A DNA stretch of 63,268 bases, the filler included, from Octopus bimaculoides (taxonomy: Eukaryota), in the NCBI RefSeq assembly GCF_001194135.2. It is 5 parts of 5 records of this genome, joined end to end, with 100 filler letters (N's around TTAATTAATTAA, not from the genome) between each part and the next. Parts side by side here need not be neighbours in the genome. Positions count along the whole stretch, not along the records: positions 36,499 to 54,626 come from NC_068987.1; 4 more parts are not named here. The stretch is one strand, 5' to 3'. Below the pieces are notes generated by a model. That model saw only the letters and a list, made by a program, of their open reading frames with translations, did no database searches and was not told where the DNA came from. A program made the position numbers and the translations under genes. The number at the start of each line of letters is the position of its first letter. The first letter of the stretch is position 1. Below are positions 37,177 to 51,299 of this stretch, in pieces.

Positions 37177-37350
37177 CTCCTGTACCACCTGCAAGGATGT
37201 TAGAGATACTTCTTGCTTGTTGGATATCTTCTTGGAGTTCAGGCAATCCAACAGCAACACACTTGCTAAGAACTTTATCAAGTTTGCGTTTATCTTTTTC
37301 TATCATAGCATCTCGCAATTTTTCACGTATATTTTCCGCTGTCATTGTGC
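37177..37350 (-). CDS. Repeat exon 13 (type A, 174 nt): [57 protein letters not shown]; may be terminal (reads through to GGT TAG)
   Basis: ggttgctag acceptor, GGAG/GTTAG at 3' end; overlaps ORF 37172..37459; no further repeat exon found downstream. Confidence 0.88.
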
Positions 37351-49300: not shown

Positions 49301-51299
49301 AGGAATTTTAATAGTCAAAAGAATGTAAATGAAAAAAAAAATCACAATGATGATAGTTTCTCATAAAACTTTTAAAGTTTTGAAATAATTCATCCTCGCA
49401 GAGAAATGTAATTAATCATGTCAGATTTTCTATAATAAAAGTTATAAGTTACAAATGAAGGTATTTTTTCCGAACTACGCATGCTTGGATTAGGGAAGAG
49501 AGAAGACATATCATTGATAAGATCGCGAATGGTGATGAAAGGAGTGTGACAAACAGTTGATTGATTGTCTAACCAATAGATTAAACAAACGATTGATTAG
49601 TTTGTTGGTTAGATTAACAAACCAACCGACTAACTATAAAGGAGTGAAATTAAACACTTGCATTTGTTTATTATTATTGGCATGACGGTCCTCCCAAGAT
49701 TTAAACAAGATTTGTTTCAACACACGAATTCTCATCAAGAATCTTCTAAACCAATTTACTGCACTTTAAAGATAATGCTTATTTCCAATTTTGGCATAAA
49801 GCCAGTAATGTTAATGATTTTGGGAGCAGTCGACTAAATCGACTTCAGTACCTAACAGGTACATTATTTTATCACTACCGAAAAGCTGAAAGGAAAGAGA
49901 GACTGTAATGGGATTTTGCTCCATACAAAAAGGCAGAAGAAATACAAGGTATAATAATAATTGTTTCTAATTTCAACAGAAGCCCAGCAATTTTGAGAGG
50001 AGAGTTGCTCGATACTATTGATACCAGTACTTAAACAGTGGTTTATGTTATTGTCCTCGGAGAGATGAAAGACAAATCGAGATTTGAATTCAGAAAGTAA
50101 AGATCCAGAAGAAATACTTAATGTATTTTTCAATGTGCAATTGATCCTGCTAATTCATTACCCTTTAAATATAGATCTCTGTTTTATGCACAAAGCCAGC
50201 ATTTTGAGGTGGGGGTTAGACGATTTCATAATGTAATGTAAAGAGTTCATAATGTAAAGAGTTGGAGCAAATACCACAAGGCAGCTTTTCGGTACCCTAA
50301 CGATTCGGCTAGGTCGCTAACTTTATTGTCTAGGATTTAGACACAAGGCCAGCAATTTTAAATCGTGAGGAGGGTGATTTTTTACACATGTCCCAGTACC
50401 AGGGTGGTAAAATTTATCGACTTCCGAGGGATAAAAATCAAAAGTGACATTGAAGGGATTTGAACTTAGAACGTAAATACCCGAAAAAATAGAGCAAGGT
50501 CATTTTTCCACCTCTCTAATGACTCAACCAATCCACTACCCTTTAAAGACAATAATATGACATCAAAACCACAAACCTCCCCAACTGCCACTAAGGCTCT
50601 TCAGGGCATGTCTGGCTTTAGAGAGATCGATTCCAAGTTCTGGATATTTGGCATCTTCAGTCTCCACAATGATTTTCTTTAATGTTGCTATATCTTTGCG
50701 CCGAACTGCCATTGCCAACTGATTCCGCAAAACATCAGGAGATTTAATTTCTGCCAATATTGGAGATAATTCGTATTAGCTCAACTACATTGTATTTTTG
50801 TTGATTTTTGAAAGATGAAATTAGCGAAATACAACATCAATAGCTTCGTTCCTTTTCTTTCAAATTACGGGAATTATTTTAAAACGAGTATCTAAGAAAA
50901 CCATAGTCGGTTTAATTTTCACTCCTACAAGGAAAAGGTTATAGTAACTTAAAAATTAAATACAAAGAAATTTCAAATTACAGAAATTAACTGAGATTTT
51001 TGAGTTGTTTTTTTAATTTTATTTCTTTTATTCTTTCTTTCTTTTATTTATTTATTTATTTATTTATTTATTTATTGCTGCAGAATGAAAATTACGAATA
51101 TTTTGAAATTTTAAACACATCTAACCTCCTGTGCCTCCTTCGAGAATGTTTAATGTCTTTCTAGCTTGTTGTATATCATCTTTCAGTTCTATTATTCCTG
51201 AAGCTAGACATTCATTAATTACTTTACCTAAATGGTATTTATCTTTACTCTTCATTGCCGCTTGAATTGCCTCTTGAAGCGCTTCAACTGATTTCGTTC
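37177..51299 (-). CDS. Multi-exon gene segment: 13 tandem phase-1 exons each encoding one 58-59 aa alpha-helical repeat (2271 nt, 757 codons if all spliced); gene ends not identified
   Basis: 13 mutually similar exons read by hand. Each has an AG acceptor and GT donor in phase 1, length 174 or 177 nt and no in-frame stop. Motifs L-R..L..A, [KR]D, L..[VI]I, C, [YM]PEL..D, AR..L and a Gly-rich end are conserved while introns are unrelated. Confidence 0.9.
38989..39228. repeat. Palindromic element (~75-bp inverted arms) between (TA)n tracts
   Basis: 38989-39061 is the near-perfect reverse complement of 39152-39228. Confidence 0.85.
39115..39162 (+). ncRNA. Candidate minimal type-I hammerhead ribozyme (variant core), Penelope-type
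   Basis: GTCT-CCGATGA-A-GGGATAT(atgaa)ATATCCC-A-GAAA-C(AGCT)G-TA-AGAC: stems I, II and III all pair; core differs from CUGAUGA at position 4. Confidence 0.5.
40097..40270 (-). CDS. Repeat exon 12 (type D, 174 nt): [57 protein letters not shown]
   Basis: ggttgtctag acceptor, GGAG/GTTTG donor; not in ORF track. Confidence 0.9.
40396..40460. repeat. (TA)n microsatellite; others include (GAT)n ~23835-23872, (CA)n ~38170-38200, (CT)n ~41323-41358, (GT)n ~54400-54560, (GATA)n ~54830-54895
   Basis: Directly visible. Confidence 0.95.
42051..42227 (-). CDS. Repeat exon 11 (type C, 177 nt): [58 protein letters not shown]
   Basis: ttgttag acceptor, ACAG/GTTAG donor; overlaps ORF 42046..42234. Confidence 0.9.
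44199..44372 (-). CDS. Repeat exon 10 (type B, 174 nt): [57 protein letters not shown]
   Basis: gtgtcttag acceptor, GGAG/GTTTG donor; not in ORF track. Confidence 0.9.
44634..44807 (-). CDS. Repeat exon 9 (type A, 174 nt): [57 protein letters not shown]
   Basis: gatttttag acceptor, GGAG/GTATA donor; not in ORF track. Confidence 0.9.
45308..45481 (-). CDS. Repeat exon 8 (type D, 174 nt): [57 protein letters not shown]
   Basis: tttttatatcag acceptor, GGAG/GTCTG donor; overlaps ORF 45276..45461. Confidence 0.9.
45908..46084 (-). CDS. Repeat exon 7 (type C, 177 nt): [58 protein letters not shown]
   Basis: tctattaag acceptor, GAAG/GTTTG donor; not in ORF track. Confidence 0.9.
46320..46515 (-). 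mobile_element. tRNA-head SINE family 3 in intron 6-7
   Basis: Reverse complement of the family at 59990-60200 (tggcagaatcgttag A-box-like, gttcaaa B-box-like); older copies at ~49795-49900 and 50340-50540. Confidence 0.75.
46687..46860 (-). CDS. Repeat exon 6 (type B, 174 nt): [57 protein letters not shown]
   Basis: gatgccag acceptor, GGAG/GTTCG donor; overlaps ORF 46655..46885. Confidence 0.9.
47155..47328 (-). CDS. Repeat exon 5 (type A, 174 nt): [57 protein letters not shown]
   Basis: ttttaaatag acceptor, GGAG/GTCAG donor; overlaps ORF 47126..47317. Confidence 0.9.
47400..48000. repeat. Composite repeat in intron 4-5: direct duplicate plus fold-back; same family at 57790-58370
   Basis: ggagaaaaac.attagttt..ctatttgccaacgtaaaatggcagtcctgat.aggacggtgttactacc at ~47420 and ~47725; inverted copy at ~47930-47995. 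Confidence 0.75.
48338..48511 (-). CDS. Repeat exon 4 (type D, 174 nt): [57 protein letters not shown]
   Basis: ttcgattag acceptor, GGAG/GTTAG donor; not in ORF track. Confidence 0.9.
49087..49263 (-). CDS. Repeat exon 3 (type C, 177 nt): [58 protein letters not shown]
   Basis: cattctctag acceptor, CAAG/GTTGT donor; not in ORF track. Confidence 0.9.
50577..50750 (-). CDS. Repeat exon 2 (type B, 174 nt): [57 protein letters not shown]
   Basis: ttggcag acceptor, GGAG/GTTTG donor; overlaps ORF 50563..50757. Confidence 0.9.
51126..51299 (-). CDS. Repeat exon 1 (type A, 174 nt): [57 protein letters not shown]
   Basis: ttttattag acceptor, GGAG/GTTAG donor, open frame; not in ORF track. Confidence 0.9.

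Follow-up and report, generated by a model that had tools for sequence, protein, structure and literature searches.

We analysed a stretch of DNA of 63,268 nucleotides from Octopus bimaculoides (RefSeq assembly GCF_001194135.2), called the window here, and within it the part that comes from NC_068987.1 (36499–54626), called the piece. The piece is AT-rich and microsatellite-rich, as expected for an animal genome. It holds an array of 13 exons on the minus strand, each encoding one copy of a small module with three predicted helices. This region is an interior part of a protein-coding gene of O. bimaculoides that is transcribed from the minus strand and spliced. All features of the array are listed in Table 1.

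Thirteen stop-free stretches with one common motif were found on the minus strand. Each is exactly 174 nt long, or 177 nt in the case of exons 3, 7 and 11. An AG acceptor and a GT donor bound all 13 exons (24 of 24 splice sites canonical), and every exon is in phase 1-1, with two bases preceding the first full codon. Spliced together, exons 1–13 give 2271 nt, or 757 amino acids without a stop, and each exon encodes one module of 58 or 59 residues. A profile of the module was then used to search the six-frame translation of the piece at a permissive threshold. Exactly 13 matches were obtained, scoring 78–90 bits each (E values of 1e-25 to 1e-29). This search found no module on the plus strand and no degenerate relic module anywhere in the piece, long introns included. 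The initial annotation had proposed 13 minus-strand exons of these lengths, phase and positions, and both the splice borders and the profile search agree with it.

Table 1. Exons and introns of the module array, in the order of transcription. Positions count along the window.
Feature	Type	Coordinates	Strand	Length (nt)	Profile score (bits)	RNA evidence and remarks
Exon 1	A	51126..51299	-	174	83.9	Phase 1-1; AG/GT; RNA junction to exon 2; upstream partner exon outside window
Exon 2	B	50577..50750	-	174	77.7	RNA junctions 50750/51126 and 49262/50576
Exon 3	C	49087..49263	-	177	83.1	Non-Gly linker; RNA junctions
Exon 4	D	48338..48511	-	174	79.6	RNA junctions
Exon 5	A	47155..47328	-	174	84.5	RNA junctions
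Exon 6	B	46687..46860	-	174	79.0	RNA junctions; P0008, from a contig of another run, matches it at 90% identity
Exon 7	C	45908..46084	-	177	79.7	RNA junctions; 4/4 differences from related octopus synonymous
Exon 8	D	45308..45481	-	174	81.4	RNA junctions
Exon 9	A	44634..44807	-	174	80.2	RNA junctions
Exon 10	B	44199..44372	-	174	83.4	Junction to exon 11 (1971-nt skip, CT..AC) in two runs
Exon 11	C	42051..42227	-	177	82.0	RNA loose end before 42050 is identical to the first bases of exon 12; P0001 is the spliced product of exons 11 and 12
Intron 11		40271..42050	-			Holds assembly gap 41359-41629, with TA/GA microsatellites on either side; no module match near the gap
Exon 12	D	40097..40270	-	174	89.5	RNA loose end behind 37352 is the end of exon 12
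Exon 13	A	37177..37350	-	174	83.2	Downstream loose end reads E-MQSPDYLRD
Start of intron 13		36499..37176	-			No module match; next exon beyond low edge of piece
Intron upstream of exon 1		51300..54626	-			No module match; preceding module exon (ending ...SFHKLTGSFG) not in piece

The 13 modules align without internal gaps, with the consensus GxKSP[DE]xLRxxLxxAxxxKDKxxLExxIxECEAAGYPELxxDLxxARxxLxxLGGGRG. A cysteine is present in 10 of 13 modules, a PEL or PEI turn in 10 and a Gly-rich linker in 10, so these counts, as first reported, hold. The three modules of 59 residues have an acidic or polar linker instead. In UniRef the array is represented by a single 129-aa "uncharacterized" fragment, A0A0L8GLC5_OCTBM (P0001), which bears out the earlier description of the array as hidden from annotation.

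Transcription and splicing were followed with RNA contigs. Contigs from three runs of a single study place nine junctions within 44100–51400 on the very bases predicted, each with CT..AC on the plus strand and hence GT..AG on the minus strand. At junctions 11-12 and 12-13, loose ends of RNA contigs match the neighbouring exon. All 12 junctions are thus supported by RNA contigs, as the initial annotation had anticipated, and the result was repeated in two further studies. One of these two studies has a single RNA contig of 6330 nt (depth 43) in which exons 1 to 10, eight of them listed, follow one another as in the genome and with the expected spacing. In a stranded run of raw reads, the first mates that cover exons map to the plus strand, which is what a minus-strand RNA should give. 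Exon words are also present in several other RNA runs.

Two variable positions were seen in the exons. At 45356 (exon 8, codon 43) the window has A (Phe), whereas four O. bimaculoides runs and both DNA runs of related species have G (Leu), so the assembly may carry a minor allele here. At 42115 (exon 11, codon 38) a synonymous T>C polymorphism is present in two of four RNA runs.

The assembly has a gap in this region, a run of N at 41359–41629 inside intron 11. In three runs, RNA contigs pass from 42051 straight to 40270, and their 30 overhanging letters are the first bases of exon 12. The UniRef fragment P0001 consists of exons 11 and 12 spliced, followed by read-through into intron 12, and the order of module types C to D is unbroken across the gap. 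Because of the RNA join, the P0001 splice and the unbroken A-B-C-D order, the gap affects neither the frame nor the exon count in observed transcripts. Long TA, GA and CA microsatellites flank the gap at 41279–41358 and 41630–41833 and probably caused it. Further long microsatellites lie at 37640–37700, 38190–38230, 39370–39680, 40380–40450 and 54370–54580.

With gaps and many microsatellites in the piece, the array could in principle be an artefact, in which a shorter array was falsely expanded or unrelated pieces were joined. We consider this extremely improbable. The modules differ from one another by 43–74% in protein and therefore cannot be collapsed or duplicated copies. Of the sampled words, 86–94% are present in independent DNA runs, and contigs of related species are collinear with the window over 44100–51400. 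The genomic order and spacing of exons in the 6330-nt RNA contig also speak against such an artefact.

The array is longer than 13 modules and continues past both edges of the piece. On the upstream side, RNA contigs reach 201–202 nt beyond exon 1 into sequence that is not in the window. The last 30 letters of this overhang (loose end at 51301) translate to ...SFHKLTGSFG, the end of another module, also absent from the window. On the downstream side, RNA contigs extend 794–975 nt past exon 13. The exon after exon 13 begins E-MQSPDYLRD, which is the start of a type B module. A 62-nt stretch about 85% identical to exon 11 lies 699 nt, or exactly four modules, farther down the transcript. By arithmetic, the transcript in the 6330-nt contig runs 3851 nt past exon 13. 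This contig would hold about 36 modules if all of it were array; it may include a C-terminal domain and a 3′ untranslated region.

The modules fall into four types, and these follow each other in the order A-B-C-D three times, with one further A. Identity between modules is 49.6% at offsets of 4, 8 and 12, 42% at offsets of 2, 6 and 10, and 34.6% at odd offsets. When module order was permuted, none of 20000 permutations reached the observed periodicity. Type A carries C-x-A-S-G-x-P-x-L, D-I-Q-Q-A-R and a linker ...IL-x-GGTG; types B and D carry YPEL or YPEI and a Gly-rich linker; type C has 59 residues and an acidic or polar linker. A set of 58 modules from three sources is conserved in the same columns, mainly the hydrophobic core together with R9, D20, E30, C31, E38, D42 and R47. 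An S/T-P-[DE] motif stands ahead of helix 1 at module positions 4–6 (for example at 50739–50731 in exon 2); most modules of the 58-module set have it, with Ser or Thr in about 80% and Pro in 59%. The motif looks like a helix N-cap and might also be a minimal proline-directed kinase site. We also considered whether the linkers make this an RGG/RG-box protein and rejected the idea: RG occurs in just 4 of 13 linkers (GGGRG or GRGRG), and the rest are GGTG, GSWG, GSHG, GEGLG or acidic.

The array had been described as old and constrained, with introns that share no visible similarity, and the comparisons agree. Protein identity between the 13 modules is 26–57%. The proportion of synonymous differences between modules is about 0.74 (saturated), compared with 0.3–0.4 for non-synonymous differences, and identity at the three codon positions is 0.53, 0.66 and 0.36. 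The intron flanks are no more alike than shuffled sequence (global identity of 0.59 vs 0.58). Against contigs of related octopuses, the exons showed 7 synonymous and 3 non-synonymous differences in one comparison and 5 and 3 in another (totals of 12 and 6 among the differences listed). An estimate from these listed differences gives a ratio of non-synonymous to synonymous rates (dN/dS) of about 0.15. For 44199–45244, where the list of differences is complete, divergence is 2.3% in exons vs 4.0% in introns.

These values bear on the suggestion that the array is a transcribed but non-functional repeat, either a decaying exon array or one derived from transposable elements. RNA depth is low and the introns are covered in the same runs, and annotation pipelines skipped the array. 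However, each of the 13 frames is open, and the 24 splice sites are all canonical. The dN/dS of about 0.15 against related species, a module length kept despite saturated synonymous sites, precise splicing in several studies and the lack of relic copies in the piece likewise argue against decay. We regard this explanation as very improbable.

The fold of the module was predicted with AlphaFold2 from shallow alignments. For one module the model has three helices (residues 5–18, 21–34 and 37–53) with a mean predicted local distance difference test score (pLDDT) of 82.6. For four tandem modules, each again has three helices; mean pLDDT is 81.3 and the predicted template modelling score (pTM) is 0.47, and the A-B and C-D linkers have pLDDT below 50. 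The model suggests bundles on hinges and not one rigid body. The prediction agrees with the initial annotation that one exon is one module of three helices. Its further picture, a beads-on-a-string helical rod of about 757 residues, is right in the 757 residues and the separate bundles; "rod" overstates the rigidity, given the low-confidence linkers and the pTM of 0.47.

No known fold was matched. A Foldseek search of the PDB gave no significant match: the lowest E was 0.08 with the four-module model and 1.3 with the single module, for which generic three-helix proteins such as bS20 came out best (E above 1). A Pfam search of the 757 residues and a search of PDB sequences also gave no match. 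The spectrin repeat too forms an elongated cytoskeletal element from tandem three-helix bundles. Spectrin repeats are about 106 residues long and joined by a continuous helix, whereas the bundles here are about 50 residues on flexible linkers. We rejected the spectrin repeat (PF00435) because there is no Pfam match, the units are of 58 residues with disordered linkers, and Foldseek returned nothing at E below 0.07.

Relatives were identified by an exhaustive HMMER profile search, which matched 216 proteins at E ≤0.001, most of them fragments from single-exon open reading frames (ORFs). Two of the matches (P0088 and P0127) were discarded as spurious short-repeat matches. A word-indexed protein search gave no match for the full 757 residues, and four modules matched just P0001 and P0151. 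One of the informative long matches was P0085, an older model of the O. bimaculoides KY-like protein, whose 90% cluster contains XP_052825369.1 (O. bimaculoides "kyphoscoliosis peptidase-like, partial") and CAI9725887.1 (Octopus vulgaris, 2069 aa). P0085 has a Transglut_core domain and three Ig-like_KY domains. CAI9725887.1 has a head 99% identical to P0085, then a charged stretch, 16 modules and a C-terminal region. Each of the 16 modules scores 22–80 bits against the profile of the window.

A second long array was found in a 151-kb contig from ENA, ctg115097l (ERZ21867824; L003–L005, record 52554–107663). The assembly is metagenomic, and the contig is animal DNA. Behind an ORF with Ig-like_KY (L004), 45 kb of that strand carry at least 29 modules in A-B-C-D order; the count covers L003–L005 and leaves out 5 kb as well as the remainder of the contig. 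The modules are mostly separate 174-nt exons, with two A-B pairs lacking an intron (L003 15365–15712 and 19455–19802). Its first module is 81% identical to v1, the first octopus tail module, so the contig is probably from a cephalopod. A one-to-one orthology search among the modules of the window, O. vulgaris and L003–L005 gave only v1 as a clear case (81%); all others were 41–64% identical. Between O. bimaculoides and O. vulgaris, true orthologs are about 95% identical, as judged from v1.

More distant members of the KY/hillarin/LTD-1 family (Transglut_core PF01841 and Ig-like_KY PF23265) were also compared. In molluscs, the module sits directly after the family head. The Haliotis asinina KY-like protein XP_067666272.1 (P0146) has Ig-like_KY and six degenerate modules, and KY-like proteins of corals have one weak module-like unit after the head. 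Ig-like_KY is found in P0085, P0146 and the L004 ORF, all with modules downstream. No module match was found in fish KY, nematode LTD-1 or brachiopod hillarin, nor in the other octopus KY paralogs (P0161–P0163), which end in hydrophobic tails. A literature search on kyphoscoliosis peptidase in octopus, hillarin and KY-like proteins found no description of the module.

Judged by these profile matches, the module and the C-terminal array of KY-like proteins in cephalopods belong to one family, which Pfam lacks. The two arrays share module length, Gly-rich linkers, A-B-C-D order and, in L003–L005, mostly one module per 174-nt exon. They differ in that modules of the window are at most 62% identical to any module of CAI9725887.1 and that the piece shows no KY head. 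In O. vulgaris 16 modules are annotated, and the transcript of the window may have more. Read from the module sequences, O. vulgaris modules v4–v11 are also in A-B-C-D order, as are an RNA contig with three modules from another species (P0002/P0151) and at least five units of contig L005. The four-module super-repeat thus appears, from these sequences, to be old and common to several species.

The proposed history of the array has to be revised in part. The initial annotation had linked the module to molluscan KY/hillarin-like proteins. That link stands, as the profile matches KY-like proteins of O. bimaculoides, O. vulgaris and Haliotis that carry Ig-like_KY, with or without Transglut_core. 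The tails, however, are arrays of 16 to at least 29 modules. The single C-terminal modules that had been proposed are an artefact of truncated gene models, given the 16 modules in O. vulgaris and at least 29 in L003–L005. A lineage-specific, 13-fold amplification of such a tail can also be dropped. The modules are too far apart in sequence and at synonymous sites, the super-repeat is common to species, the array exceeds 13 modules, and the modules of the window are as near to their type in the KY tail as to each other. The amplification is ancient and not recent.

The profile also matched protist proteins with long tandem helical repeats of about 48 residues, mostly in myosin tails: P0048 (Rhodelphis), P0049 (a Breviolum-related myosin), P0071, P0143 (a MyTH4 myosin), P0149 (Alexandrium) and P0012. 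These repeats match profile columns 9–54 in register and have no Pfam model. They share the pattern R-x-x-L-x-x-A-x-x-x-x-D-x-x-x-L-x-x-A-I-x-E-A-E-x-x-G-L-...-A-R-x-x-L. An hhalign comparison of the octopus module with the protist repeat gave a probability of 97.8%; as the protist units were picked with the octopus profile, this match is biased and suggestive only. The protist unit is shorter and without the Gly-rich linker, and so probably forms a continuous helical structure; it also sits in a different host protein and in another kingdom. The likeness may be convergence of helices rich in A, E, L and R. A bolder and rather doubtful idea is that it reflects an ancient, undescribed eukaryotic three-helix repeat of about 50–58 residues, common to protist myosin and metazoan KY-like tails (one in corals, six in abalone). 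In cephalopods such a repeat would have been expanded exon by exon to arrays of at least 30 with a four-module super-repeat, giving a giant cytoskeletal length-setting tether or spring nearly all of which octopus annotations would have missed.

In the Haliotis protein P0146, residues ~855–983 lie after the modules. All eight of the PDB sequence matches listed for them are dynein heavy chains (E of 0.27–1.5), in a stretch that we take to be the stalk and microtubule-binding region. A relationship between the KY-like C-terminal domain and the dynein microtubule-binding domain was rejected, as the signal is weak for Haliotis and was not reproduced in Octopus or in Pfam.

Taken together, the region is part of an exon-per-module array gene of the KY-tail module family. 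We think it probable that this gene is the KY-like gene itself or a close paralog, and that its product serves as a flexible tether. The protein would be cytosolic. Its array would form a long segmented tether or scaffold of small, independently folding bundles on hinges, which would space or connect terminal domains in the cytoskeleton, with tether length set by the number of modules. Exons of symmetric phase 1-1 would allow single modules or four-module units to be duplicated, lost or skipped without a break in the frame. The array could thereby grow and shrink by in-frame exon duplication and loss in units of one, two or four modules, and the symmetric phase would explain both the growth of the array and the fixed size of the module.

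Similar layouts are known from giant modular proteins of the cytoskeleton such as nebulin and titin. Nebulin has seven modules per super-repeat and lies on thin filaments; in titin, the Ig and PEVK exons have symmetric phase and encode one domain each. A nebulin module is one helix of about 35 residues, and the domains of titin are beta sandwiches. The likeness to the octopus array is thus in the hierarchy of module and super-repeat and in the symmetric-phase exons, and there is no relationship in sequence or fold.

A rival role, in the manner of nebulin, is that of a periodic binding platform. A repeating partner, for instance a filament subunit, would be bound by every module or every A-B-C-D unit, and the super-repeat would act as a molecular ruler. 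The four-module periodicity is significant and kept between species, and the charged residues R9, D20, E30, E38, D42 and R47 are conserved across the 58 modules. In addition, vertebrate KY is reported to be sarcomere-associated and linked to filamin C (PMC6078408, PMC13544891). However, the conserved charges could just as well form salt bridges and helix caps that keep a very small bundle stable, and the periodicity may just record the unit of duplication. The linkers vary in length and chemistry, and the partner is putative. We consider a binding platform quite unlikely.

Several observations weigh against a tether encoded by the KY-like gene. The tether role is drawn from architecture, since Pfam, PDB sequences and Foldseek against the PDB gave no relative of known function. 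Expression is low or modest in the runs examined, with introns covered in the same runs. The piece contains no head domain, start codon or stop codon, and the window does not overlap the 39-kb KY-like locus (L006, gene and 10-kb flank). The O. vulgaris KY-like model passes from its 16 modules straight into the C-terminal region, with no orthologs of the modules of the window (best identity of 62%). Finally, RNA contigs from five runs share one end point 201–202 nt upstream of exon 1, whereas their 3′ ends differ. This common end is possibly an assembly-graph branch from shared linker sequence, an RNA-editing site, or an alternative upstream or 5′ exon.

Three of these points would fit a separate gene, that is, a stand-alone paralog made mostly or only of modules, or with another head domain, that arose by an ancient duplication of the KY-tail array. 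They are the O. vulgaris model without modules of the window, the lack of overlap with the KY locus and its 10-kb flank, and the common contig end, which could mark a distinct 5′ structure. On the other hand, a block duplication would leave a block-wise match of units in the window to units of the KY tail, and no such block pattern was found; type for type, the modules of the window resemble those of the KY tail as closely as they resemble one another. The RefSeq model of O. bimaculoides, XP_052825369.1, is partial and sits among assembly gaps. In L003–L005, at least 29 modules in A-B-C-D order stand behind a KY ORF on one strand, so the octopus model, with its 16 modules, may be incomplete. 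A separate gene is possible but the less likely case, and we lean slightly towards the array being the A-B-C-D core of the O. bimaculoides KY-like gene rather than a close paralog. Transglut_core PF01841 and Ig-like_KY PF23265 gave no Pfam match in the spliced 757 residues, but the 5′ part of the gene lies outside the piece, so this says nothing on the whole gene.

The KY-like locus itself (L006; CM046607.1, 38,866,898–38,906,347) contains ten runs of N, and the gene in it does not translate to XP_052825369.1. The first tail module, v1, is an unannotated exon at L006 38204–38377, 8.7 kb downstream of the end of the model. It is the sole module in the 10-kb downstream flank.

Other features of the piece were recorded apart from the array. 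Interspersed repeats of very high copy number lie in the introns at 45564–45807, 46296–46539, 47516–48003, 49468–50443 and 50932–51175. Their contig word depth is 10^4–10^5 in DNA runs and high also in RNA runs. Many contigs jump between 46.3–46.5 kb and 50.0–50.5 kb or 51.04 kb, which suggests copies of related elements. ARAGORN and Rfam found no tRNA or Rfam feature in the piece, intron repeats included. At 52655–52956, ORFs on the two strands overlap and both encode ...AMCT(E/K)EQRAVIR..., a pattern that suggests a small inverted duplication. The minus-strand ORF at 52720–52956 (…EQRAVIRFLWSEGVSGVEVQRRL…) looks by eye like the N-terminus of a mariner-type transposase; Pfam gave no match. 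RNA depth peaks at 52574–52640 and 52842–52908.

The array described here is a new member of the KY-tail repeat genes of cephalopods, or a part of one, and is mostly unannotated. Octopus annotations have cut an extensive coding region, which is expressed and conserved, down to a 129-aa fragment, and the comparison suggests that cephalopod KY-like gene models are truncated or exon-skipped. The module is a repeat domain without a Pfam model. A profile of the 58 aligned modules would improve the annotation of molluscs and perhaps of protist myosin tails. The strict layout of one module per exon in phase 1-1, with its nested hierarchy of two and four modules, is a clean example of how exon duplication builds giant modular proteins. 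Loss of the vertebrate member of the KY/hillarin family is reported to lead to myofibrillar myopathy (PMC13434911). If the array is attached to a KY-like head, it would offer a lead on this poorly understood family.

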